Below the pieces are notes generated by a model. It was not told the DNA's origin, did not search any database, and saw nothing but the letters and a program-made list of their open reading frames with translations. This document shows positions 1-61,562 of a stretch of 64,000 nt of DNA, one piece after another. Each line of letters starts with the position of its first letter. The first letter of the stretch is position 1. Origin of the DNA: Takakia lepidozioides (taxonomy: Eukaryota > Plantae > Bryophyta); the NCBI GenBank assembly GCA_030704615.1, contig CM060731.1:58404001-58468000 (forward strand), written 5' to 3'. The position numbers and the translations under genes were made by a program.

Positions 1-780
1 AGGAATGGGGCCTCGCAGTTTGGGAGATCTCAACGATGACACAAAGCACAATAAACTATCTTTCTTCTATATTAGTATTAATCATTACATTTGTTTCAAG
101 AATTGTGGAGTAGCCTAGTGGTATGGAGATACTCGTGGTGTAGCTAGTCTCAAGTTCAAATTTGTGCAATGAAATATATGTATTTTCAAAGTTTTTGGAA
201 AACTCCAAATTGCATGGTGATTTGAACCTACGATTGATGTCGTGACAATGCTAATCCTTACCACTATGCTACCCTCTTAATCATTCTAACCCCTTGCTGT
301 AGACTTATATTTAAGGTATTGTTTACCCCCCTATGTATGTATAATGTTGTACATGGGGGGGTTAAAAATACCCCTCCTGTGCACGCATGTGGCTGGTACA
401 TGTTGGCTAGGGTGCACCCCCCAAGGATGGAGTATACAACTAGATACAGTACTTTTGTGTATATCCGTTATTAATGTTGCAAATCTAGATAATCTACCTT
501 ATTGTATCTAAGCTTGAACTATACTTGAGCCATATGAGGGCCACCTTACCATTGTATGAAAAAACTCTCGGAGGTTGAATGGTAGCTACCCACAAAAATA
601 GAAATAGAAAGAAGAGAGATTTGTGTGTTTGAGAGTTATTCAAGCGTCCACAATCAAAAGCTTATCTTCATGTAGCCCAAAGTTCTACAGATTAGAGACT
701 AAATTCTATCACCAAGGAATATTGGCTAGTGCATTCGAGGTAAATACATGTATTAGTGATCCTGAACTGATTTGGTCCAG

Positions 781-3093
781 GGATCCATGCAGAATATAAA
801 ATCTGTGGATATGCAAAGAAGATTGAGCGATATGACAATGAGTATCATCACTCGCATAGTGCTTGGGAAAAAATGGTTTGGAGTAGAGACGACTACTGAG
901 GAAGGTCAGGAGTTTAAGAGCCTACTTGTAGAACTTTTTAACCTCTCTGGTGCTTTCAACCTTGGTGACTACATTCCATTCCTAAAGCCTTTGGACCTGC
1001 AAGGCTATGAAGCCCGCATGAAAAAAGTTGCTGCAAGCATGGATCGCTTCTTTAGTATGATGATCCTAGATCATCGGAAAGAAGGAATAAACAATTCAAA
1101 TGCCCAAAAAGACCTTGTAGATGTATTGTTGTCTGTTGTTGGCGAGGAGGGTGCGGAGTATACGGTTGACGACTCTTCTATGAAAGGACTCATGATTGTA
1201 AGTATATTCATCTCCTCCACATGTACTCATATTTTTATTTTTTTTTATGTAAGACGTTGTCCATATGTTGGATTCTCTCTGGCTTCACTCTGTCTCTATT
1301 GTTTGGGCGTAGATTCCCTCTGGACAGACCAATTTTCTCTGTAACATTTAATACCGTTACTAGATTACAGCTTACTCTGTATTGCAATTTTCTCAAGATT
1401 GTTTAAAGGTTGGCCATTATCCATTTGGGCTCTTGATCGGAAACCTAGATCATCAAGAAAGTACACATGTAAGTCTCAAGCATATAATAACTTTGTAGAT
1501 ATGATGGATCACATAAGACCGACCAAATCAGCAAATTGGGACCCACCATTAGATGAAATCGAGGACATGCCAAACACTCGAAAGTGGCAACTAGAATTTA
1601 CTTACTTTAGCTCTAACCAGGTTTCAAAACCCTTTTAATCTGTCACTATCACAAATCACATATCATCTTTTCATGACTTTCTTGGATTTGAATTGTTTGT
1701 CACAATGGCGGAGCACCATGGATAGGGATAGAAAAATATAGGATAAAGACCGTGTGTGGATATCTTACACCTCTCCTTTGTTAGGACAGAAATCCATAAC
1801 CTAGCTTTTGACGCAATTTCCTATGTCTCAAAATTAATTGCGTTTGAGCAATCGAGCTAGTGACATGTATACAACTATCTTCACATATATTTACCTGGAA
1901 GAAAATTTGGATGCAAATTTTGATGAAAACCGCTTATAACTAGGTTATGTACAATATCCACCAAGACTACCTAGTGCTTGGCTATGGGATGTAGCCTCAT
2001 GGGTAATCATAATCCTTTGGTCACCAACCCATCCCACCAATTGGAAATGGAATCCACAACCCCAAATAGAGAACATCAAGCTCTAACCAGTAATCTACCT
2101 CATTCATCTTGATTTTTAGTGGATAATATTATTAAAACTGGATAATAGAGGATGTTTGAGCACTGTATGCCGCTTGTATGCCGTGCAGCCTTATGAGGAC
2201 AAGGTTGTACTAATTTGGAGGCCACAAGTGATATTGCTCTTTAGGCACCTTTAATCTTTTTCTTTTTCTTTGAGTACCTTCTATTCCGACCAAGCAAGGG
2301 TACAAAACATGTAATCCTTTATATCTGGAAGCCCTGACTGATGCTAGCAAAGCCACAAAGTCAATAGATCTTTACATGACTCAAAGAGCTCGTCAACTCT
2401 TAAATGCACACATAGACTGGTTAGAAATACTCGAGATGATTTATCTCATCGTGTTGATTCTTGATGCAGGATATTATTGCGGGGGCCACTGACACATCGG
2501 CAACAACTATAGAATGGGCGCTCACACATCTCTTGCGACATCCCAATGCAATGAAGAAAGTTCAAGAAGAATTGGATGATGTGATTGGGTGTGATAGGTT
2601 GGTGGATGAAGCCGACATTCCTCGGCTCCCTTATCTTCAGGCAGTTGTGAAGGAGACCCTACGCATCAGCCCTCCAGCTCCTTTCCTGCCGCATGAGAGC
2701 ATTAAAGCTTGCCAAATAGCAGGCTACCATATTCCTGCAAAGACACTGACAATGGTAAATGTATGGGCTATTCATCACAACCCATCTGTTTGGCAGAAGC
2801 CTCATGAATTCATTCCAGAGAGATTTGACAACAGTAATATGGATTTGAAAGGCCACGATTTTGAGCTCTTGCCATTTGGATCAGGGCGACGAGGTTGCCC
2901 AGGCTTGCATTTAGGTTTGATTATGGTTCAAAGCAGTCTGGCTCAACTACTCCAAAGCTTTACATTCGCGCTTCCAAACGGCCAGCATCCCCAAGACTTG
3001 GACATGAGCGAAGTCTTTGGGATCACGACTCGCAGAGTTGTTCCATTGCAAGTTGTCGTGAAAGCTCGCTTGCCTCATCACTTGTATACTTAA
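781..3093 (+). CDS. Cytochrome P450, CYP71 clan (A-type), 3' exons: 781-1197 and 2470-3093; N-terminal exon(s) not in the window or lost
   Basis: First exon encodes FNLGDYIPFLKPLDLQG and DLVDVLL, then GTAAGT donor at 1198 and TGCAG acceptor ending 2469 (phase-0 intron just before the I-helix, the conserved A-type position). Last exon has DIIAGATDTS, KETLR, FIPERF and heme motif PFGSGRRGCPG. The 5' boundary 781 assumes the CAG at 778-780 is an acceptor. Confidence 0.9.
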
Positions 3094-3099
3094 TTACTT

Positions 3100-3276
3100 A
3101 ACAACCAACATATAGCCCAGTGGTAAGGGCATATACACTCTTACGAGTGGTTGTGGGTTCAAGCCACCCTGTTGGTTGTTACAAAGGTGTCCACCTTCCT
3201 ACCGCAAGGCAGTAGCCTTTCTGGCTCAAGTGACACCATAAGTTACGCTTGCTTCGGCAATGCGTCCACCTTCCTT
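3100..3276 (+). mobile_element. tRNA-derived SINE inserted at the P450 stop codon
   Basis: 11-bp TSD CTTAATTACTT (3089-3099 and 3277-3287). A-box TAGCCCAGTGG and B-box GGTTCAAGCC. Absent from the paralogous site near 63204-63214. Confidence 0.8.
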
Positions 3277-3489
3277 CTTAATTACTTCGTATTCCCACAT
3301 ATGGTTTATATCTTTTTGATATCTATTAATAGCTTATTTGACTAGAGCTACTAATAGCTGATGTGGAGCATTCACAACTATTGATGAAGAGTTGTCTCTT
3401 CACATGTATCAAGTTCTTTTACAAACTTTAACTGCATCTACAAACTTTAAGATTCCATTCAATGAACTGGTGAAATCATGTGCATGCAT

Positions 3490-3900
3490 ATTATGCGATC
3501 GTCACACTCCTCCACACCACATTTCGTTGAGTCATATTGTCCAACACTCCCTTTGCATCTTCAATCTCTAGAATTGGGTGTCCACCAGGGGCCTGAATAT
3601 TCATAATGACATATGGTACAGGTCCAGCTTTGATGACTAGCTGGTCACCTGCATTGACTCGTTGCCTTTTTCCAAGTCTTCTAGGCTCGCACACGCATTG
3701 CAAACGCTAACAAATGTAGGGCATTTGGGCTTCACCCATCCTTGCATGATTTGCTCATATGTCTCCAAAGCATTCCTACCACGCCCATGCTTTGTAAATC
3801 CTGCCATCATTATATTCCTTGTGATCAAACATCGTTGAGGCATTATGTCGAACGTTTGGTGAGTATCCACGATGCTCTCGCATTTGACATACATGTACAA
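3490..3900 (-). pseudogene. Degraded PLS-class PPR gene fragment
   Basis: Frameshifted motifs MMAGFTKHGRGRNALETYEQIMQGWVKPKCPTFVSVCNACASLEDLEKG and IEDAKGVLDNMTQRNVVW. Confidence 0.75.
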
Positions 3901-5424
3901 GTGTTGTGTAGAAAAACGTTCAAGGCTTGAATCCACTTCAAATGGATAGTGTGAGCGTTTTAGGCCTTTCATCTTGATGTACTGATGCAAGAGACAGACA
4001 TATGTATCTAAATATTATGAGACACATCATTGGTTCAACATTTGCAGAGCCTCTGTGAGTTGTCATGGACCTTATATACTATCCTTATATGCCCAAAAGC
4101 GCTAGAAGAGAACTTCCCTCTCTTGGTCATGTCTCCAAATTGGTGGTCGTGGTACTGGAGGTGCCTGATTTCATCAATTGTGCTACCACTGCTGCTTCCA
4201 ACTACCCATGCAGGATTCTTGTAGCCATCAATCCACATGGCCTCATTGGTACTCAAGATTGTGCTTGAGAACCGGCCCTCTTAGATGAATCTGGGTTGAC
4301 ACTCCATGCATGTCACCTTCAGCTATCCCTGCCTCGGCACCAAAACCAAACAGGTCCTATCCATTGCTACTACATTTTTGGCTGCAAAGTCTTGTGAAGT
4401 GGACTAGGGATAAATTTTGCGTGCACCTGTGTGCTTAAGATAGACCTGCTAGCCATGAAAGTAGCATTAGACATTACGAAACATGCCAAATCATTTTTTC
4501 TTGCCTAGACGTCGATATTTGCCATTATTTTTTAACGTCTTGACATTTGAATGCGAAGGGCAGCCGCTCGCTACCCTCGAAAATACCATTGAAGGCTTCA
4601 ATTCTCAAGCCATCACCTCAAAGCCCGACTGCCTTTCTGTAGCTGTGGAAGGAGCTGAGTTTTAGAAGACAGCTCCACTGACCCGCTCAATGCTGTTTTC
4701 AAGATATATGCATATAGCTTGACCTTCTCCTTGCAAGGCCAACCATATTACAAAACACAATACACTTCCGATGTTTTCTTCCATAACTCCACTCCCATCA
4801 ATATGACTGCATTGATGGCTTATCAAACAGTTTTAACTTGAGAGAGATTGAATCATTTAGCAGAGTGCATTAGTGCGAAGAAATGAAGGTGTTGGCTCCT
4901 TGCATCCAATCAGATGGAGAAGCGGAAACATATCATGAAACCACTTGAGGATGTAGTACACATGATAAGCATCTGGAAAATAGAGGAGGTTCTGAAGTAG
5001 AGGCTAACAGTCCAATGATTCTTCTCTTTATGAAGACAAAAATAATTCTCTTCTGAGGCTTGTAATGTCTTCTCATACATTGATTTGTTGATCCAGTTGT
5101 CCAATGCTGCTTGATGGTCATGGTGGTTAGATAATCAACACTAAAAATGCTTACAAAAATGTCATAAAAAAGTCTTGAATATGAAGTATGCTTACTGGTT
5201 ACTATCACTAAAGATCAGTGGCATCTGGAGTCCGAGGTCCTTCGATGCTGCCAGCCAACAACCTAATCACGTCAGCGTGGGTATGCACTGCCTCACTCTG
5301 TGCATTGTATTCTATCCAATGGCAACAATCAAATTCACTTCATCATACAGTTCAATCCATATTGCGGAATCAACATTTAAATGAATCTAAACCTCCGTAG
5401 CACTTCATCCATAGCAGGTCTGAA

Positions 5425-6165
5425 GGGTCATTTGGCACCAGCATAGCTACGGCGTGAGCCCAGCCCCATGAGCCTGGGAGCTGAGCTCACGCTTTAGCCA
5501 CGAAGCGTGAGGTATATATATGGCCACCACCCGAAAAAGGGCAATAGCCACAAGTAAACTGGCTCTTAGTTATGTTGGCTATGGCCTGAGACTTCTCTGG
5601 TCTACTAATAAGTCTAGAGAGTATTGCACTCCAATGAAGAATTTGAGGGAGGAAGAACAAATTATAGACCTATATGCACACATTAATATGATAATAACAA
5701 TTATTTTGAGTTTGATTTTAAAGTTGAGAACTGGTTTTGTGTATTCTTATCAAATGGTACGTTTCACATATATAAGTCTTGTAGGAATCCCAAAGTGACA
5801 AAATCATACGTATTGAAACACAAATGAAAATATTTCAATCCATTCCATGAAAATTGTACATGTTGATATTTGTACAATCATGGTAAGAGATACTTAAAGT
5901 TGGGTCCCTACGAGTCAGAGGAAAAACAAAACAAAAAAAATCGTCAACGATTGTGCTTTTGCCCCTGTCAGGATGATTGCCCTGAACACTGCTTTAATTT
6001 CCAATTACCCGCGAATAGGATCTCTTGGCCATGTCCACGAGTATATGCTCTATTTCCTTACAACAACACCATGCGCTCACTCTTAGTGGGTGAAACGTGA
6101 GCCCAGCTCATAGGCTCACAGGGCTTGGCTCACGCCGTAGATACACTATTGCTATACCAAATGAA
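5425..6165. mobile_element. MITE with long imperfect terminal inverted repeats
   Basis: CTACGGCGTGAGCCCAGCCCCATGAGCC... (from 5447) is the reverse complement, with about 6 mismatches in 45 bp, of ...GGGCTTGGCTCACGCCGTAG (ending 6140). Similarity extends outward to TCATTTGG/CCAAATGA. AT-rich noncoding interior; TSD not resolved. Confidence 0.65.
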
Positions 6166-7424
6166 GGGATCATGTAGGGGAATTAGATTGCCCTATCTCT
6201 CACTGCCATGCGCTGGCTTGACATGATCTTTTACTTACGGTTCCAATATATGATGGTGATCTCATATGAGTAAACAAATTTTTCTCGTCTGCTTAATATG
6301 TTGTAGAGAGAGAAGACTCTGGCTGAAGTCGGCGTAGAGCCACTTTGCCTCACGGCTACTGGCCCCTTTCGGGGTGGGCCCTTAACATGTTGTATTAAGA
6401 AAGCTATTCGTTTTGTGGTTGTTTTGAAATATTTAAATTTGACTTTGTCACTTTTGCGAGTTGTTCCTTTGCGCGGACCTCTGTCTTTGTTGTGCATTGC
6501 ATGTCCTTCTAAGCGTGCACCCCCTCCAAATATGAGTTCACCCTTTGAGAGAAAAAAAAATCCCATCTATGCTAGAAATTGAACAATCTCATCATAACCA
6601 AAGAGGGTCTATCATTTGTCATATTTACACTATGGATCTAGCCTAAGCTGTACTATATATTTATACCGATCCTTAAAGCGAAATGAAGACTCCTTCCAAA
6701 TCTGGCATAATTTACGTTGTCACTTCACCCCAATGAGGGCTTCTATGAGGGCCTTCGTGATGAAGTCTTAGTATAATGTGCAGTGTTCTTTGTAATGTCC
6801 GCAAAAATAGGGTATCTATCCAACCACAATCCTTGGATGTAAAACTCTCAAAGGCTTGGGCAAGCGTAAATGTAACATCATGTCATCATTTTCTAGTAAT
6901 GGTTGCATAATATTTTTTAAACATAATGTTATGTAATTAGACTTGTAGTCATGGAGCCATAATTATGTGACTAGCCTTTGTTGTGCACTCATTATAGCTT
7001 TTTTGAAATTCTCATTCAGTCGTATCATAATACCTCAATCCAATTGGATATGTGATGCATTTCTCTATCATGTTTGATGTTTCCCAATTTGCCATATATG
7101 CTAAATAATTGTCATTGTTTTTTCATCTGCAAATAAAAATTAATTCAAGGATTTATACAATTCTGATAATACACATGAAAGAGGTGAGAAACCCTCTACT
7201 AAGTCCTCCAGGTAAGCTATTCATCAAGCTTAGTAAACAAACCTGATTATTGAATATAATGGTATGCTCTAAAATTCAAAATGTATCATGTTGAACCATC
7301 TGGCACAAGTCCCTCCTAGAGAATACTATTCTTTTCTTTGCATTCTTCAGGGGAAGCATCATCTTCTCTCCATGATTTGATGATGGGTCGAAGAGAGAGA
7401 GATGACGTCAACCAAAGTTAGCAA

Positions 7425-8970
7425 TTATAAGAGCCTCTTGCCCTTCATGGGTCGAACAATTTTCAGGTTTGACACATTGCAAGCTTCACGAGGATCATTC
7501 ACTTTGCATTCAATGGGAATATTAGCCGTCGAACAAGTCTCGTTTGGGAGTTGCAAGCACCTCCCCTATTAGCATTGACAAACGTCTCTTGCCCTTGATG
7601 GGTCGAACAATTTTCAAATTTGACGCATTGCAAGCTTCACGAGGATCATTCGCTTTGCATTCAATGGGAATATTAGCCATATTTGTGTCGACCAAGTTTT
7701 GTGTGGGAGCTGCAAGCACCTCATCTGTTGGAGTCGATAAGAGCCTCTTGCCCTTGATGGGTCGAACAATTTTCAAATTTGACGCATTGCAAGCTTCACG
7801 AGGATCATTCGCTTTGCATTCAATGGGAATAACCGTATTTGTGTTGAACAAGTTTTGTCTGGGAGCTACAAGCACCTTGTCTGTTGGAATCGATAAGAGC
7901 CTCTTGCCCTTGATGGGTCGAACAATTTTCAAATTTGACGCATTGCAAGCTTCATGAGGATCATTCGCTTTGCATTTAATGGGAATATTAGCCGTATTTG
8001 TGTCGAACAAGTTTTGTCTGGGAGCTATAAGCACCTCGGCTGTTGGAGTCGATAAGAGCCTCTTGCCCTTGATGGGTCGAACAATTTTCAAATTTGACGC
8101 ATTGCAAGCTTCATGAGGATCATTCGCTTTGCATTTAATGGGAATATTAGCCGTATTTGTGTCGAACAAGTTTTGTCTGGGAGCTATAAGCACCTCGGCT
8201 GTTGGAGTCGATAAGAGCCTCTTGCCCTTGATGGGTCGAACAATTTTCAAATTTGACACATTGCAAGCTTCACGAGGATCATTCACTTTGCATTCAATGG
8301 GAATATTAGCTATATTTGTGTCGAACAAGTTTTGTGTGCCGGGAGCTGCAAGCACCTCGTCTGTTGGAGTTGATAAGAGCCTCTTGCCCTTGATGGGTCG
8401 AACAATTTTCAAATTTGACGCATTGCAAGCTTCACGAGGATCATTCGCTTTGCATTCAATGGGAAAATTAGCCGTATTTGTGTCGAACAAGTTTTGTTTA
8501 GTAGCTGCAAGCACCTCGTCTGTTGGAGTTGATAAGAGCCTCTTGCCCTTGATGGGTCGAACAATTTTCAAATTTGACGCATTGCAAGCTTCACGAGGAT
8601 CATCCGCTTTGCATTCAATGGGAATAACCGTATTTGTGTCGAACAAGTTTTGTGTGGGAGCTGCAAACACCTCGTCTGCTGGAGTTGATAAGAGCCTCTT
8701 GCCCTTGATGGGTCGAACAATTTTCAAATTTGACGCATTGCAAGCTTCACGAGGATCATCTGCTTTGCATTCAATGGGAATAACCGTATTTGTGTCGAAC
8801 AAGTTTTGTGTGGGAGCTGCAAACACCTCGTCTGCTGGAGTTGATAAGAGACTCTTGCCCTTGATGGGTCGAACAATTTTCACATTTGATGCAATGCAAG
8901 CTTCATGATGATCATTCGCTTTGCATTCAATGGGAATAACCATATTTGTGTCGAACAAGTCTCGTATAGG
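7425..8970 (-). repeat. Coding minisatellite, 10 units of 156-162 bp
   Basis: Recurring GATGGGTCGAACAATTTTCAAATTTGACGCATTGCAAGCTTCA on the + strand. The tenth unit (7425-7535) is out of frame after an 8-bp deletion. Confidence 0.95.
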
Positions 8971-9126
8971 ATCAGTTGCAATCACCTCGTTTGTCTCGGG
9001 TTTGGAGAAACCCCTAAGACCCCGTGTAGTTGGGACATTTGAAGCTGTCACGGTACAATCGATGTTGAGTGCAATGACAATAGCTGCCACGACTAGTACC
9101 CACATAGCTCCATTGAGGCGCTCCAT
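7522..9126 (-). CDS. Secreted tandem-repeat protein, candidate multi-core Cys-loop peptide precursor (534 aa from ATG 9126)
   Basis: Hydrophobic signal-like N-terminus MERLNGAMWVLVVAAIVIALNIDCTVTA, then 9 in-frame units of consensus NLFDTNT(A)xIPIECKANDPREACNASNLKIVRPIKGKRLLSTPTDEVLAAPTQ. Indels between units are multiples of 3. Confidence 0.8.
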   Translation of the reverse strand: MERLNGAMWVLVVAAIVIALNIDCTVTASNVPTTRGLRGFSKPETNEVIATDPIRDLFDTNMVIPIECKANDHHEACIASNVKIVRPIKGKSLLSTPADEVFAAPTQNLFDTNTVIPIECKADDPREACNASNLKIVRPIKGKRLLSTPADEVFAAPTQNLFDTNTVIPIECKADDPREACNASNLKIVRPIKGKRLLSTPTDEVLAATKQNLFDTNTANFPIECKANDPREACNASNLKIVRPIKGKRLLSTPTDEVLAAPGTQNLFDTNIANIPIECKVNDPREACNVSNLKIVRPIKGKRLLSTPTAEVLIAPRQNLFDTNTANIPIKCKANDPHEACNASNLKIVRPIKGKRLLSTPTAEVLIAPRQNLFDTNTANIPIKCKANDPHEACNASNLKIVRPIKGKRLLSIPTDKVLVAPRQNLFNTNTVIPIECKANDPREACNASNLKIVRPIKGKRLLSTPTDEVLAAPTQNLVDTNMANIPIECKANDPREACNASNLKIVRPIKGKRRLSMLIGEVLATPKRDLFDG

Positions 9127-9235
9127 GCCTTTGAGGCAGAAGCTTAAGTGAATGACGTCTTTTATGTTTCTCAAGTGAAATAAATGAAGAGAGCGAAAAG
9201 ACACAGATAATACATGGGAGGGGGAAACACGAGAT

Positions 9236-9242
9236 ATTTATA
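9236..9242 (-). promoter_or_regulatory. Putative TATA box of the repeat-protein gene
   Basis: TATAAAT on the minus strand ~110 bp upstream of the ATG at 9126. Confidence 0.45.
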
Positions 9243-9822
9243 CAATCTATCTATATTTTATAATTAATAAAATACTAGTATAATGTGATGTACTATGCTT
9301 ATTAATACATATTTTTTTGTCTTTTTGTTTTTTTTGAATAAGAAACTAAGAAAGAAAAGTTTGACCAGCACAAACTTTTCATTAGATTTTTTTGGTTTTC
9401 CTAATATGTTCTAAAATTGACAACCAACTTTACGTATCTACTACGATGATTGTAAGAAAATCAACGAGTGTACAATTTTCATCTAATGGATTGAAATGTT
9501 TTCATTGGTGTTTCAGTACGTATGATTTTGTTAGTAGGCCGGTGTCGAGTAGTATTTATGCACGTAGGTGGACTGGGCATGGTTTCATGGTGTAGTAGGG
9601 CAAAGACACAGAAATAGCCATGGCAGGGTGGCATGGTCTAGGGTCGCCTTCCATAAATAGACCAAACCAAACTAAGTCTATGTGCTGGAAATTGTTTTGT
9701 GCATGGATGTTGGTAGGTGATGAGCGGGTGAGTAGGTGAGTGGTGGAGCCCTCTTGAATGAATCTGGACCCTACCTACCACACACTAGTTCCTATGCTGA
9801 ATTGCTCGGACCAAGACTTTAA

Positions 9823-22847: not shown

Positions 22848-25800
22848 ATGCAGTCGATTCGGAAAAGACACGAATGCTTCTAGTGAACCATCCCTCCCCA
22901 CGTCTTCAACCAACCCTGGATGGAGGAGGCCCTCCCTCCTTTCCACATAACACTGATGCGTTTTATCCCCCTGGCATTCAGAGGTATGCACAGTATGAAC
23001 AACAGACTGCTCATGTTCCAGCCGCCCCTGAAATTCACCCGCCCTTTTCTCAGTCGTACAATGCAAACAGCCCGTCAGGGGAGAACCGGACATGTGCAGT
23101 TCCGTGTGGGGCATTTCCACAAACTGGGGAAGCACAACATGCTCCTGTTCAGCATGGGCACTACCACGAAGGTGTGTGGTACCCTCACCCCAACCCTCCC
23201 CCACCTGCGCATCCTCCCCAAGCAACGTATCCCAGAAGCCCCATGTATAGTGCGCCGTTGCATGGCCCTTATTCCAGGCAGCCCATAGCTTCACCCAATT
23301 GCAACGCTTCGCGGCCTCTTCAATTCCCAAGCTCACCAGCTTTGAGCACAGGTTATGTTCCTGCCCACCCCACACCCCACGTTGGTGCGTGGCAAGGTTC
23401 ATGTCCGCCCGAAGGGCCCCATGTTGCAGGTTGTGAGGGAGGAGAGGAGGCCCGTGATTCCAATATGACTCCAGATGCGCAACATTGACTGGCAAGGACA
23501 GAGCCAATTTTTTGCGCAAGGCGAGGAGAGTAGCACGGAGAGGGTTGAAGGAAACGTCTTGTGCAAATGTAGCTGCTGGGCAAAAGAGATTCATAGTTGC
23601 GTGTGGCAAAAAGGGCCCATGCGGGGATGCACGAAATGACTGGCTGGCAGCCCTGCGAGGGCAATGCCAACGTGTGCTGGACTGTTCTGTGCCCATCCAT
23701 CTTCAACCTCAAAGTCTGATTGACGAGGTGGGTGAACTATTAGCAGATGATTGGGAATATTTACCTCCTGGGATAACTGGCGCCCAACTTCGAACTGAGA
23801 TTGGAGGCGTCATTAAATACCAGCGCATCAAACTGTTTAGAAAAGTGTACTCCCGTGGCAAACCTAAGCCCCACTATGTTGCGGACAAGACTTGGGCAGA
23901 ACTTGTGAGGCATTGGAACACGCCCGAATGGCAAAAGAGTCGTGATGATGGCAAGCATGCACGGGGGCATGTTGGTGCCCCTTCGAGATCTGGACGCAGT
24001 GGCCTTAGCGGCGTTGAGGAACGTCTGGTAAATCTGCCTGTCTCATGACATTGCCAATATATTCAGGTAGTGAGGTGTCTTGTCATTTGTATCTTACTCT
24101 TAGAGGATGGCACTAATATTCCCATATCATGTCCATGTGTAGGCTAAGACAAGTGGTCGTCCTCCACTTCTATCCGAAATTCGGGGAGCAAGAATAGCAA
24201 CAAGGGGTATGGTTCTGATTCAGCAGGGGCCACCCGATTTGTAAGTAACTAACCCACCTGCATTTGTTGCAATGATGTGCTTGTCAATTATTTATGGTTT
24301 TGCCTTCCTGTGTTGTTGTCCAATAAATTACCTCGCATGGCTAGTGCGATAGATGTATTGAATCGTATTTGCACTCTTTTTGTGGCAGGGCCTTGGAGCA
24401 TTGGCTTCTCGGCTTGATGGCTTGGAAGGATGGAAACATACAATGGAGGCCAGCTCAATGGAGCACAAATTGGAATTGCAGGTAGTGAAATCCATGTTTG
24501 CCGCTGCAGTATCTAAGACAGACAAGTTCAACATGGCATTGGCAGCGAAGCTCGGTTTGGACCTGCCGAGGGGTGAATCTCCATCAACATCAAACATTGT
24601 GTGTGAGTTGTCGCCCCCTGTTCATGGTGTTGTCCCACCTGCGACTACAGTGGAAATGACAAGTACAAGTGAGCAGCCTCCTAGCAGTGGAGGCAGTGGA
24701 CAAAGGAAAGGGGGCAGTATTGTGGAAGAAGATGCCACAGGTGAGGACAAAGTTCAGAACATGGCATGTGACGATCCTTGCCTTAATTATGGTGCCAATG
24801 ATGACCTATCCCCCCTTATTGAGAAGGGAGTGCCTGTACTGGAGGATCACACCGGCAGTGAACTTAGACAGAGTGCCCAAGACATAGGGGCAGGGGCTAA
24901 GGGCACAGGAGTGGTTATTGTTGGGGCAGGGAAGAACATTGATTCAACAACAAAATTGGCCGTTGTACGGAAGGTAAGTACTCGTGTTCCTATATTCTTG
25001 TGCAGTTCCAAGTCGATTATGCAATACCTGCAGGCCGTTCATGACTTCTGTGTACATGTGTGGGTTTCTATTGATTCAGAAGCCACCAAAGGAAATTGTT
25101 GCGGTGAATATGAGGAAGAAGTCCGCAAGACTTGCTGCCAGCAACGTTGATGGGAGCCGTATGGGAAGCTTCAAAGCGCCGGCACCTGTTGTAAGTTTTC
25201 CTTCGTGGAAGTACATCCGTATTTTGTTTGTAGGGCTATATGATGGTATCTCGCGTTTTCCCTGTCCATAACTGTTGCATGTGCATAACAAATGACAAGG
25301 GCACACATTGGTGGTGTTGGCTGTCCCAGTTTCAGGTTGGTGACAAGGTCACAATGTTTGACCCCAATGCACCCAAACGGAAGGCAGGCGTGGGCCATAT
25401 ATTGGGCATGTCGACTGACTGGCTGGCTTATGTCGTTCATGCCGATTATCATGTTGTCTCTGTTGAATCAGTACATGGGGCAGATGTTGCTCTACCATAC
25501 CCCAACAATGATGTTAGGCCTCCCATTGTGATGCTCAGTGACACTGTAGGCATCACGGCCCTGTGGTCTGCCAAGTTCCTCAAACTGACCCGAACATGAG
25601 GTTGTGGGGGATCCTCAATTTGAAGGCAATTTTGACTGAACGCCACTTCATATCGATTTCACCTTTTTTTCGTTATTGTGCGCATCAATGTAGGATTTGG
25701 GTACATTGTGGGTTGTGATCAGCAGTGCAGACTTTGCAATACTTGCATGTTCAGACTAAACTTTATTTGGGCAATGAAGGGCGCACCCAACTTTGAAGCA

Positions 25801-27548: not shown

Positions 27549-30500
27549 GTGGGGGAGGTGCACATTGAGAGTGTCATCACGGAGTTACCCAGGGGTTCTA
27601 AGGGGAGTACGGCTACAGGCAGTAGCAGTGAGAGTGGGTTCACCAGACGAGGTGTTCGTTTCAGACCACCTTCACCTCTACCCTCAACTAGTGCAGAGTC
27701 AGACACAGACTTGGAGGCTTCATCAACAGGTGTGCAGTTTCATTCGCCATTATTGTGGGACGACATAGAGGAGATGTATGGAGCTACCAAGGGGCCTTGT
27801 AGGTACTCTAGAGCTGTGGGCATAATTGAGTTGGATGACTTTATCCAGGAGTTTGATAGCTGGTGTGATTTGCAGCAGATGCGCAATCCACAGCTATTCA
27901 CCCCATTCATGGCGTGGAAGGGACTGTTCCAACATTTGGAAAGCCCGCCTATGGACGATTACCACGAGTTCAGGCGAGGACATGAAGCAGAGATTGAGGA
28001 GTGGAGGATGTATTGGTCACCTGACTACGTCTCCATTACTCGAGGCACGACGCGACCAGTAGCTGCATCAGTACCAATATCTCCCACTGCCAGCACTAGT
28101 AGTGGAACAAGTAGTGTCGGTACTTCTGCAGGTGGTACCAGTTCAAAAGGTGCTACTACTCCTTCTGCCACGACTACAACACATGTGCCTGGATTCAACC
28201 CGGTGGTGGAGTTCTTCCAGGAGTTGCGGAGGAACTACCAAGGTGTACGGACTGAGAAGCTGCGAAGTTTGCAAGACTTCCAGCGCAAACCAGTGAGAGC
28301 CTGCGAGAGGCGTACACTCGTATGAGGCGCTTGATAAGTGTGACCCAAGGGGTTACTGAAGCTCAGGCAATCCAGTTTTGGTATGGAATTCTGGACAAGG
28401 AGCTCAAGAGAAGGGTGCGAGATGCAACTCTATTACAAGCAGCCCAACCCACATTAGCAGATGTATTTCTGCTGGCTGAGCGGATTGAGCTCAACATGGT
28501 GGAGGAGCGCATTGTTACCATTGGATTTGGCAAGGACATGCCTGCACGAGGCGCAGCTGCCAGCCCACATGCACAAGGGACTGCCCAACAGCGTGGTCAG
28601 GGGGGCAAGGTTTCCCAACCCAAGTTCCATGGAGCTTACAGGGGACCTCAGGTGCAGAGGCCCGTGGCATCTTTTGCAGGCCAACAGCAATCAGGGGTGA
28701 TATGTTGGACATGTGGAGGACCCCATGTCAAGAGAGATTTCCCAGAGAGTGGCAAAAGGCCGGCACAAGCACAGCTTGCACAGTTGCAGTGTGGGCATTG
28801 TGGCAAGTATGGGCATGGAGATGCCCAGTGTTATGACTTGCATCCTGAGTTGCGCCCAGGCCAGTTCCAAGGGAACAATGGTGGCCGGGGGCGAGGTGGA
28901 CCAGCCCAGAGAGGACGAGGTGGCCGGGCACAAGGTGCAAGCCAAGTGCAAGCTCAACATGGCCAAGGACGCGGAGGTCAGGGTGTTGACCAAGGCATGG
29001 CCAACCGACTTCAGCAGCTAGAGCAGAGACTCGCTGCCATGGCTACAGCTCAGGCGGTACCGGCTCCCAGGCGGGATGGTCCACCTCTTGCGCCTGAGGG
29101 AGGAGATATGGGAGACATGGGATTCATGTGCGGAGCAGCACTACCACTAGTGCAGGTGGAGTCTGCTGCAGCTGTGACTCGAGGAGCAGCACGAGTTCCT
29201 GAGCCACGAGGTGCAGAGGTGGAATTGGATCCACAGCGTGGGAAGGCAAGCCGTCAGGCGAGGCTTCCTCAGTCATTCACATTGGCGGAGACTGTGTCAA
29301 CGCCATCCATGGCACCTAGTTCTCGCCCGACTGTTACCGAGGCGGAGGTTACTATGCCATTGGGGAGAGCTACACGTGCAGCACTGACACCTGCTACCAA
29401 GGCTAGTGCAGCCGGTGTGTTGTTGGGGGCAGCCACCTCTGTGTGTCAAGCCCCACTATTCTCGGCAACCATGATTGCGACGCTGGGGGTAAGACTAGCT
29501 GCAGTGTTCAAACTAGCAGCAACACTCTGTGAGAGTGGGGATGTCACTTCATCTTCTGCGGAGTTAGTGGAAGGTGTAGTGGCAGAGGGATCCTCGGATT
29601 TGAGGGTCAAGACTACCACGACTGCGCCATGGCAAGCTGCAGCTGCCAGGTTGACGGAGCTGCCAGCTAGGCCAGCCTTTGAGCGCGCCATGGTGACACC
29701 TGGAGTTGTCTTGTTAGACAACCAGGATGACATTTTCACTTTGAGTGGACCGGCAAGCAAGAAGTACCGGCCAGTGCGGGTCTTGTTGAACTCGGGAGCT
29801 CATCCACTGATGTTGGGCAGAGCTGCTATTGCAGGTTTGGGCCTCATGGAGGTGGATATGGAGCCTTGTCCTTTCCAGATACATACATCTCTGGGAGGAT
29901 CAGAGCAGGCTCGGGGCATGACACGGCGTGAGTTGGCCATTGGACTACAGCCGGATCACCCTACAGATGGCTCAGTGATGCGAGCCAATTCCATTGTGAC
30001 AGACGCGGTCTCGTACGATGTCCTGGTTGGTGGGGCTGTGTTGTACCCCATGGGCTTCATCCTGGATTTTTGGGAGGAGTCAGCTTCCTATAGGCCTGGA
30101 TGGCAGTCAGGGGAGGGTCGTCGTGTACAGCTCCCTGTGACATTCATTGGAGGTATTGCGGCTGCCCAGCGGGGCAGGATGCCAACACTAGCCGCCTTTA
30201 CAGCTGCAGTTAGTTGGCCTGGAGAATTGTTGGAGGGCAATGCCCATGCAGAGGATGTGCCACCTCCCGCAGAGCAAGATGACATGCATGGTACGGCGGA
30301 GTTGCCTGCCATGGTTGCTCACACTCCATTGTGGGGTACGGGCAAAGATTTGCAGCAGGCTGCTGATGGACGGGTGCAACAAGCCTGGGTAAAGGCCTTT
30401 GTACCGTCAGGGGAAGAGGAGAGTGCGGTGACTGCACCAGGAACACCTCAGTTGTTGCCATTGGACACCACACCTCTTGTGTGGCAGTGCCCGGATGAAG

Positions 30501-31894
30501 GCATATGCCTTCTGGACTTGTTTGGCGGGATCAGCACTGGATTGGCTGCAGTGCTGCAGGCAGGTGTACGAGTTCGACGTTACCTGTATGTGGAGAGGGA
30601 TGAGACTGCACGACGTATCTCACTGCGCCATGTTGCTCAATTGGTACAGCAGTACCCTGATTTGTTGCCAGTGTCTGCAGTTCGTGGATACCAACAAGCC
30701 TTGCCAGCAGACATTTCGTTGCTGGGGGCGCAGGATTTGGAGCAGGTTGGCTCCATTGATCTGGTAGTGGCAGGTTGGCCCTGCCAAGGGCATTCATCAG
30801 CCGGGCATGGCAATGGATTGCGAGACTCGAGGACGGGTCTGTTTTGGGAGATGGTGCGGATTTTGCGCCACCTGCAGCTTCATCAAGCTGTACCTCTAAC
30901 ATACATCTTGGAGAATGTGCCACTGATGGGTGATTCTCGGGCCAGGGTGATGGACAGTGTGCATCAAGTCCGGTCATGGCTTGGGTCAGCAGTGTTGTTG
31001 GATGCAGCTGCAGTGGGGTCACGGGCTCATCGTCCACGGCTTTGGTGGACTAACTTGATGCCACCCGCACTGCTCAAGCGTGCATTTGATGGGGTGCAGC
31101 GGCCAGCACACCTCACAGTGGATAGCATTTTGGACACAGGGAGGCAGTCTCAACGTGTGAGACACAATGACCGTTCGCCTTTGGTAGTGGTCAACAGGAT
31201 GGGTCAACCATAAGCAGCATTACCTACACTGCTCAGCTTCCCAGGATCCCATGCTTTTCGGGATGGTGGACCTGGCCTCTTGTGGGATAGCCAGTTGCAA
31301 CAATTAGTGGAGCCCACTGCTGACGAGCACAAGCGGGCGATGGGTTTTACCACTAGTACCATGGCGGTGCCCTCTTTTTTTTGAGGCATCACGTCATCAG
31401 GTGTTGGGGCAAGCAATGGATCTCAATTGCTTGACCTGGATCATCAGCTTGGCTATGGCTGAGCAGCGCAGAGTGCGAAGTATACTTCCCTTCATGGTCT
31501 CCCTGCCTACCGAGATGGTATAGGCAGCGAGTGGGGGCGAGCAGGTGGGGACCACAAGGTGCAGGCCGCATCCATGGCACACGTGGGAGGTGCTTGAGGT
31601 TCATAAGGAGTTGGCAGCCAAGGCGGCGGTGATGGATCAGGTTGGGGATTTTTCTCGGGTTGAGGAGGACCTCAAGGATGGGATGATGGGGCAGGGTGAG
31701 ACATTGTCACGGACAGAGGAGGCAGTGGTCACTGCTCATGAGGTTGCAGCATAGCAACCACGGGACGCGTCTTCTACCTCTAAGCCTGCTGGACTCAAGG
31801 TTGCAGTCACGGAGGACAACTGGGAGCCTGATATTGGACCTATAGTCACCGGAGGAGAGAGATGACGTATACGGTGGTTCTTGAGGGCTTACAG
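27549..31894 (+). pseudogene. Gag-PR-DNMT polyprotein, disrupted by a frameshift near 28293, a stop at 31211 and a frameshift at 31375-31382
   Basis: Gag (ESLREAYTRMRRL), knuckles CWTCGGPH and CGHCGKYGHGDAQC, protease VLLNSGA/YDVLVG, then the MTase domain. Confidence 0.85.
30503..31450 (+). pseudogene. C5-cytosine DNA methyltransferase domain
   Basis: Motif I LDLFGG (30512), II YVERD, IV AGWPCQ (Cys at 30782), VI ILENV (30911), VIII AHRPRLWWTN. Past the stop, IX EHKRAMGF; past the frameshift, X VLGQAMD (31404-31421). Confidence 0.92.
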
Positions 31895-43695: not shown

Positions 43696-44195
43696 NNNNN
43701 NNNNNNNNNNNNNNNNNNNNNNNNNNNNNNNNNNNNNNNNNNNNNNNNNNNNNNNNNNNNNNNNNNNNNNNNNNNNNNNNNNNNNNNNNNNNNNNNNNNN
43801 NNNNNNNNNNNNNNNNNNNNNNNNNNNNNNNNNNNNNNNNNNNNNNNNNNNNNNNNNNNNNNNNNNNNNNNNNNNNNNNNNNNNNNNNNNNNNNNNNNNN
43901 NNNNNNNNNNNNNNNNNNNNNNNNNNNNNNNNNNNNNNNNNNNNNNNNNNNNNNNNNNNNNNNNNNNNNNNNNNNNNNNNNNNNNNNNNNNNNNNNNNNN
44001 NNNNNNNNNNNNNNNNNNNNNNNNNNNNNNNNNNNNNNNNNNNNNNNNNNNNNNNNNNNNNNNNNNNNNNNNNNNNNNNNNNNNNNNNNNNNNNNNNNNN
44101 NNNNNNNNNNNNNNNNNNNNNNNNNNNNNNNNNNNNNNNNNNNNNNNNNNNNNNNNNNNNNNNNNNNNNNNNNNNNNNNNNNNNNNNNNNNNNNN
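43696..44195. other. Assembly gap (500 N)
   Basis: Run of n. Confidence 1.
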
Positions 44196-44375
44196 GCATG
44201 TTATGACTTAGCCATATTTTGTCCTGGCAGAGCAAGAGCAAGTGTTCCCATGGAATTACCTGTAGGCCTGGGTAATTCCCTCCCGACATTAGTACCAGGC
44301 ACTCCCTTTTTCATCAATGCCGTAATTTGATGCCCAACAAAATTTTCAATGTTACTCCCCTGCATTCACACTACA
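44196..44375 (-). mobile_element. 5' end of a family B LTR inserted in the RNase H of A2
   Basis: Reverse complement aligns with 13693-13868 (TGTAGTGTGAATGCAGGGG...AAAATATGGCTAA). Confidence 0.85.
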
Positions 44376-60185: not shown

Positions 60186-61562
60186 TCCCTGAATCCCGTA
60201 CTTGGGCTTGCCAAAATGTCGTGCCTACAGAATCAAAACGTCTGCATTGTGGCGTGAGAGAATGTGGGAGTCAAAAGTCTGCCGCTGAAACAAGGTGCAG
60301 GTACAACGAAAATACTTAGTACTAAAAAATAATGGCCCAACTCCCAGCTTAGCCCCTGCTACAAATCCACGATGACTCGGGGCCGCAGGGCGTAGCTTTT
60401 CGCGGGCCACGATATCCGTGTGGGTTCCTCCGAATCATCTCACCACAGCGTGCTCTCGTATCCACCCGGATGGCGCAGCACTTCCCTCGAAATGCCGGCA
60501 ATGTCCTTGCAATTCTCCACTGTGACTCCGACACTCTTGTCTCCACAATGGGTATGTTGTACTACGTTACTACAGATGGCTCGTTATGTTCCTCAGGCAC
60601 GTGCCCTGTGCTCAAAGGAGATGACAATCTTGAACGTGCAGGACTTGCGGTGCTCGACGAGACCTCCTCGGGCAACATCATGGAACCACGAGGGATCGTG
60701 CAAATATTCTTGTCAGCTCGCCATGAATCCTCTTTTCCACCAGGTGCCTCGTCAAGTCTTCGTCTCACTGGACGGGTGTGAACATCTCCTTCCAAGTGTT
60801 GGCCTCTTCGAAGCAATGGCGTGTCCCAAAGGCCCTCTCGCAAGGTTGCCGCCTACTTGCGTGACCTCTTGACGAAATGAATAGGTTGAGCTCTATAGAT
60901 AAAATGGATCACATAATACCCAAATCACCAAACATAGATATATATGACCCACCATTAGATGAAATTGAGGACATGCCAAAGACTCGAAAGTGGCAAGAAT
61001 TTACTTACTCTAGCTCTAAACAGGTTTCAAAACCATTTTAATCTGTCACCATCACAAATCACATATCTTCTTTGGATGATTTTTTTGGATTTGAATTGAT
61101 TGTCACGATGGCGGACCGGAGCACCATGGGTAGGGATCCAAAATATAAGAAAGTAATCTTACATCTCTCTTTCGTTAGGGCAGAATTCCATAACTTGGCT
61201 TTTGATGCGATTTGCCTATGTGTCAAAATTAATTGTGTTTGAGCAAACGAGCAACTAAAGTGACATGTATATAACTATCTTCATATTTCTTGGTAGAAAA
61301 TTTGAATTTAAATTTGGATGAAAACCGCTTATACCTAGGTTATGTACAATGTCCACCAAGACTACCTAATGTTTGGCTACGGGATCATGTAGCCTGGCAG
61401 GTAATCATAGTCACTTGGTCACCAACCTGTCCCACCAACTAGAAATGGAACCACAACCTCATCTACCTCTTTCATCCTACAAAATTTATGATTTTTATTG
61501 GACAATATTATTAAAACTGGATAATAGAGGATGTTTGAGCATGCATCGTATGCCGTCTATAT

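Follow-up and report, generated by a model that had tools for sequence, protein, structure and literature searches.

A Takakia lepidozioides gene with nine tandem Cys-x8-Cys units is a candidate precursor of secreted one-disulfide peptides

The Ib-AMP precursor of Impatiens has acidic spacers. Like the multimodular alpha-hairpinin precursors Tk-AMP-X and Sm-AMP-X, it is a secreted plant protein that yields several basic Cys peptides (PMC4695807), with cores that carry four Cys (CC..CxxxC or CxxxC-CxxxC). RALFs, which are cut by S1P/SBT6.1 at RRxL, and PROSCOOPs, which are cut by SBT3.5 at RxLx/RxxL, combine a signal peptide with basic-x-L sites, and each releases a single mature Cys or cationic peptide. 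Proven plant subtilase sites are RRIL/A in RALF23 and RRLR/S in GLV1 (SBT6.1/S1P) and GRRLM/G in PROSCOOP12 (SBT3.5), with a consensus of RxxL/RxLx (PMC13082318). Maturation of CLEL6 takes two steps, the first by S1P and the second by an Asp-dependent subtilase. CTNIP/SCREW phytocytokines are secreted peptides reported from angiosperms, with a single core in which two essential Cys (spacing, 9 to 11) form one loop (PMC9191895). In fungi, KEX2-processed repeat proteins (KEPs) have a signal peptide and near-identical, dibasic-bearing repeats (PMC6339444, PMC7329392).

We analyzed a window of 64,000 nt from the moss Takakia lepidozioides (contig CM060731.1); all coordinates are window positions. 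An earlier note on this DNA had proposed a secreted precursor that frees about nine looped peptides. We found a single minus-strand open reading frame (ORF), running from an ATG at 9124-9126 to a TAA at 7522-7524, that requires no intron (Table 1). Plus-strand ORFs over the array were rejected as shadows, with at least four stops per frame. An upstream GTG start at 9204 was also dropped; it lies near the expected transcript start, and we preferred the ATG at 9126, which has a good context. The leader is hydrophobic at aa 7-20, with a peak Kyte-Doolittle value of 3.1 over 11 residues, and the V-T-A ahead of residue 29 agrees with the -3,-1 rule. On these two grounds, the precursor likely begins with a signal peptide. 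Hydropathy and the R-G-L-R at aa 35-38 thus bear out the earlier description of a signal-like N terminus followed by a short pro-region with RGL.

Table 1. Features of the candidate precursor gene (window coordinates)
Feature	Coordinates	Strand	Remark
Intron-free ORF, 534-aa precursor	7522..9126	-	The other five frames contain stops across the array
TATA-box-like hexamer, ~115 nt upstream of ATG	9237..9242	-	Consensus match only
Second TATA-box-like hexamer	9257-9262	-	Consensus match only
Predicted signal peptide, aa 1-28, with an extra Cys24 inside	9043..9126	-	Predicted from hydropathy and the -3,-1 rule by eye
R-G-L-R, aa 35-38, RxLx subtilase-type site in pro-region	9013..9024	-	Resembles SBT6.1 site of GLV1 (PMC13082318 Table 1)
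Unit 1, most diverged; ends GKSLL; without sequon	8845..9012	-	
Unit 2, 52 aa	8689..8844	-	
Unit 3, 52 aa; protein identical to that of unit 2	8533..8688	-	
Unit 4, 53 aa	8374..8532	-	
Unit 5, 54 aa; 3-nt insertion	8212..8373	-	
Unit 6, 53 aa	8053..8211	-	
Unit 7, 53 aa; DNA identical to that of unit 6	7894..8052	-	
Unit 8, 52 aa	7738..7893	-	
Unit 9, 53 aa; ends GKRRL	7579..7737	-	
Unit 10, broken by 8-nt deletion; 18 aa translated	7425..7578	-	Assembled sequence

Tandem Repeats Finder reported one array at 7427-8960 (period, 159; 9.8 copies; 92% matches). We split the protein at G-K-x-x-L, which gave a 94-aa leader-plus-unit-1 segment, eight units of 52 to 54 aa, and an 18-aa tail. Each unit runs from a variable, mostly acidic spacer (charge, -1 to -3, with one at +1) through a basic Cys-x8-Cys core (+2 to +5; ~3.5 kDa) to G-K-R-L-L. 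The 31-aa core, counted with its GKRLL end, is encoded by the last 93 nt of every unit. All nine in-frame units have the Cys pair 9 apart (x8), and an N-x-S sequon stands immediately after the second Cys in units 2 to 9 only. The terminal motif is GKRLL in units 2 to 8, with variants in units 1 and 9. Hence, the earlier note was right about the unit lengths (a range that holds for units 2 to 9), the two variant ends, and the sequon in all units but the first. It had counted 9 to 10 copies in 7425-9126; exactly nine are in frame, whereas the tenth has lost the frame, so that translation ends at 7522. The deletion in unit 10 falls after plus-strand position 7529, between short AC repeats; it is known from the assembly alone, and the read contigs of all runs leave 7543-7590 uncovered. 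The tenth core lies in another frame and ends in G-K-R-L-L-stop (TAA, 7425-7427).

Neighboring units are near-identical in two cases (2/3 and 6/7) and the terminal units diverge most, as expected from unequal crossing-over. In the 10 nt from the old stop codon (7416-7427, minus strand), 8 match the start of the unit-10 spacer, and the old stop reads TAA where units carry TCA or TCG. This likeness may be a trace of the array's origin, either from a once longer array or from a single-unit gene that was duplicated across its stop. In the latter case, GKRLL began as a natural C terminus and is a less certain linker site; the motif may be just the end of one ancestral unit, passed on to each copy as the unit duplicated.

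We next asked how the units differ from one another. Length differences among units 1 to 9 are all multiples of 3 and keep the frame. Pairwise DNA difference between copies is 5.0% in the 31-codon core and 13.9% in the spacer. Counted as distinct changes relative to the consensus, amino-acid-changing events are rarer in the core (12/72 sites) than in the spacer (16/39 sites; Fisher P = 0.006, with few events and a core/spacer boundary chosen by eye), whereas silent events show no such contrast (7/21 in the core versus 2/12 in the spacer). The dN/dS ratio of the core is ~0.5, not significantly below 1 (P = 0.12). Both Cys are invariant, as had been pointed out earlier, but not beyond chance (P ~0.40), given just 12 amino-acid-changing events among young copies. 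The predicted cleavage site of unit 9 has four base changes and still keeps a basic-basic-L motif. The observed/expected CpG ratio is 0.84 in the coding sequence versus 0.51 to 0.58 in the flanks, and hence there is no sign of methylation decay. We concluded that the coding constraint is real, given the sole open frame, the frame-keeping indels, and a core-versus-spacer contrast beyond chance. A conserved core with a freely evolving spacer is what plant multi-core secreted precursors have, and read from sequence it is the pattern of a conserved product plus a dispensable pro-piece.

In window orientation, the gene is flanked 4.3 kb upstream by a plant A-type cytochrome P450 gene with an intron (772-3093; Pfam p450, exons scanned one by one) and downstream by ~45 kb of LTR retrotransposons together with an En/Spm fragment. 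In a tandem segmental duplication, a second copy of the P450 gene with its 3′ flank (1496-4102) starts at 60896 and is followed to 63998 with 79 to 91% identity; nested retrotransposons separate the two copies. Since the second copy runs off the right end of the window, the peptide gene may have a paralog just beyond that end. The En/Spm (Ptta) transposase-like fragment (23485-24048, plus strand) has a weak Pfam match (E = 0.0003, below the cutoff). An LTR-retrotransposon ORF at 28322-31213 (plus strand) includes a C5-cytosine DNA methyltransferase domain (Pfam PF00145; E = 1e-13; aa 797-906). Several 9- to 10-nt CTGTG-rich minisatellite arrays lie inside retrotransposon copies at 35742-56000, some of them read in frame in long ORFs, and two opposite-orientation copies of one retroelement surround an assembly gap of N at ~43700-44200. 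Closer to the peptide gene, 5444-5511 is repeated in opposite orientation at 6076-6143, and an inverted copy of 5798-5903 lies at 9424-9531. Short dispersed repeats occupy 6069-6202, 6270-6403, and 7392-7423 in the 3′ flank; the first two are at ~40x single-copy depth in read run X1.

Six read runs from three studies contain the stretch or part of it, and none is recorded as RNA. We compared four of them (X1, X2, X5, and X6) over 5600-7590, a region with one unit only. X1 and X2 are DNA and matched the flank without differences. Core depth in these two runs was ~12 to 14x single copy, which would allow for cores beyond the ten of the assembly, either at this locus or at a paralog. A second copy of the 3′ flank (roughly 90% identical) is present in X2 contigs at 6977-7106. 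In X6, a plant metagenome, one contig carries two consecutive cores 156 nt apart, which is independent support for the tandem layout. X5 comes from an independent study and is guessed to be RNA; it contains the units at a summed depth of 117 to 152 per bin, and the single-copy flank is absent. The core in X5 was at ~3 to 4x the depth of the dispersed repeats, compared to ~0.15 to 0.45x in the DNA runs X1, X2, and X6, contig depth being a poor measure. Its word share of 0.38 is compatible with the leader being present or absent. As to the transcript that the earlier note had asked for, X5 shows internal-unit alleles, but neither unit-10 alleles nor the 3′ UTR of this locus. These data suggest that the units are transcribed, possibly from a paralog or another allele; expression of the exact locus is suggested.

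We searched for relatives of the protein. Word-based searches for homologues gave no match with any of three queries, namely the entire protein, its N-terminal 146 aa, and its N-terminal 94 aa. Homologues keeping the Cys pair and the KR site, which the earlier note had proposed as a check, did not appear when a unit HMM was compared to 1.84 billion representatives (0 matches at an E value of 0.001). Back-translated motifs gave no confirmed match in JGI metagenomes. A degenerate Cys-x8-Cys..GKRLL pattern hit 45 loci there, all single matches and many with stops, which we attribute to chance (best HMM E value, 0.15). There was no usable match in the ESM Atlas and no match to PDB sequences at an E value of 10, and the exact protein is absent from a 15-billion collection. 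Whole-protein Pfam matches (Cys_rich_CWC, Ig_J_chain, and others) are artefacts of summed repeats; no stretch passes alone, and they vanish on single units. These searches are blind to a 31-residue core at less than ~50% identity, and distant single-core relatives could be missed. AlphaFold gave no confident fold for one unit (pLDDT 52) or three units (pLDDT 40), which is compatible with a non-globular precursor, weakly so at such alignment depth. The earlier note had recognized no family, and our sequence, profile, metagenome, and structure-sequence searches turned up no described one.

The resemblance to described systems lies in layout. No sequence similarity to Ib-AMP or alpha-hairpinins was detected, and their four-Cys motif is absent from the units; the Takakia core has instead two Cys (x8), a sequon, and a GKRLL end. 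RALFs and PROSCOOPs release one mature peptide, whereas the Takakia precursor has nine cores, each with the site at its C terminus. The proposed single loop is like that of CTNIP/SCREW, but the spacing is 8 in all units and the CTNIP motif is absent. The analogy to KEPs and KEX2 processing, drawn earlier, holds for the layout of a signal peptide (by hydropathy only) with at least three near-identical repeats. It fails for the host, a land plant (the flanks are plant, and the piece extends at least 19 Mb further), and for the site, K-R-L-L with one K-S-L-L variant in unit 1; no fungal homologue was found. Judged from sequence, the multi-core precursor layout is known in plants and the core is new, and the combination of loop, sequon, and C-terminal subtilase-type site is without a match in our searches. 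The gene is real, probably functional, and an orphan.

We favor, as moderately probable, a processed plant secreted multi-core precursor that is cut by subtilases and releases cationic one-disulfide peptides for defense or signaling; predicted cleavage is the best reading of the leader, nine units, and constrained core. The signal peptide would carry the precursor into the ER, where each Cys-x8-Cys pair would close a 10-residue loop and the adjacent N-x-S might be glycosylated. An S1P/SBT6.1-like or other RxxL/RxLx subtilase would then cut at R-G-L-R and at each K-R-L-L/S junction, freeing nine ~5.8-kDa units that each end in KRLL like the original last unit. The N-terminal 21 to 23 residues, variable and mostly acidic, would be a pro-piece, trimmed at Asp or Asn sites before the core. 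The end product would be a cationic peptide of ~31 aa (3.5 kDa; net charge, +2 to +5; one disulfide) that acts in the apoplast. Asp/Asn residues do precede each core, and trimming to ~31 aa is plausible by analogy to CLEL6. The likeness of the basic-basic-L-L motifs to plant S1P/subtilase sites, noted before, extends to RxLx matches in units 2 to 8 (R-L-L-S), unit 9 (R-R-L-S), and the leader (R-G-L-R), so that the junctions appear to fit subtilase RxxL/RxLx motifs better than KEX2. Against this reading, a cut after K-R-L-L would put Lys at P4 rather than the canonical Arg, and the site of unit 1 is without any Arg. The absence of a homologue in our searches, and hence of cross-species conservation, also counts against it. 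Defense, through an antimicrobial or an immune signal, is slightly favored over a developmental role, since multiplication of near-identical cores raises dose and an acidic-spacer/basic-core layout is typical of plant defense precursors.

The same points about the sites are consistent with an unprocessed secreted repeat glycoprotein, in which the units stay joined, each with a disulfide loop and an N-glycan, as a wall or mucilage component or a multivalent binder or inhibitor. A sequon is present in 8/9 units, which small peptide ligands do not usually have; the old C terminus retains GKRLL, although no cut is needed there; and a faint beta-hairpin is predicted around each loop (pLDDT <50). 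We regard such a glycoprotein as unlikely, given the free spacer and constrained core typical of a pro-piece plus product, a protein not rich in extensin/AGP motifs, and no confident repeat fold. It is improbable, in our judgment, that unequal crossing-over has recently expanded a small secreted-peptide gene in this lineage and that the array is now neutral or in decay, with a paralog as the expressed copy. That account would fit the 92% identity of the units with two pairs nearly or fully identical, the frameshifted last unit, the lack of the locus's 3′ end in X5, the second genomic copy of the 3′ flank in X2 contigs, and the duplication of the neighboring P450 block 60.9 kb away, but not 534 codons without a stop, indels in units 1 to 9 that all keep frame, the core/spacer contrast, or the CpG ratio of the coding sequence relative to its flanks.

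The remaining alternatives concern the peptide itself. The IP-x-C loop start and the R-P..G after the loop loosely recall RALF; in addition, RALFs are released after RRxL and CTNIPs need two Cys. The core might therefore belong to a known Cys peptide family, as a multiplied and strongly diverged clade-IV-like RALF half-peptide or CTNIP/SCREW-like ligand that acts through a receptor kinase. Such a relationship is very improbable, as Pfam RALF gave no match at E values up to 10, each unit has two Cys only and no YISY (RALF has four Cys), and the Cys spacing of 8 differs from the 9 to 11 of CTNIPs, which are reported from angiosperms. The earlier note had also read G-K-R as an amidation signal, with peptides ending ...IVRPIK-NH2. 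G-K-R does follow every core but that of unit 1 (8/9; unit 1 has G-K-S), but amidation is unlikely, since all land plants, mosses included, are reported to lack the enzyme PAM (PMC6529398). We give almost no credence to processing of the animal and Chlamydomonas type, in which a KEX2/prohormone-like cut at K-R would be combined with C-terminal amidation directed by Gly.

For the processed precursor, we tentatively propose that its products are an undescribed bryophyte family of cationic, N-glycosylated peptides with one disulfide, nine per subtilase-cut polyprotein, which may be antimicrobial or ligands of an orphan receptor kinase. If this is true, bryophytes could routinely use polyprotein peptide precursors, which size-limited small-peptide screens would overlook. 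A published survey states that angiosperms are to date the only plants with identified lineage-specific peptide families, and its moss screen kept ORFs of <200 aa (bioRxiv 10.1101/2024.05.13.593875), so a 534-aa polyprotein would be missed. If processed as predicted, the precursor would provide a new, synthesizable scaffold of 31 residues with one disulfide, suited to antimicrobial and receptor assays. With its nine sites, it would also be a natural substrate on which the specificity of subtilases for Lys or Arg at P4 could be probed in a non-vascular plant.
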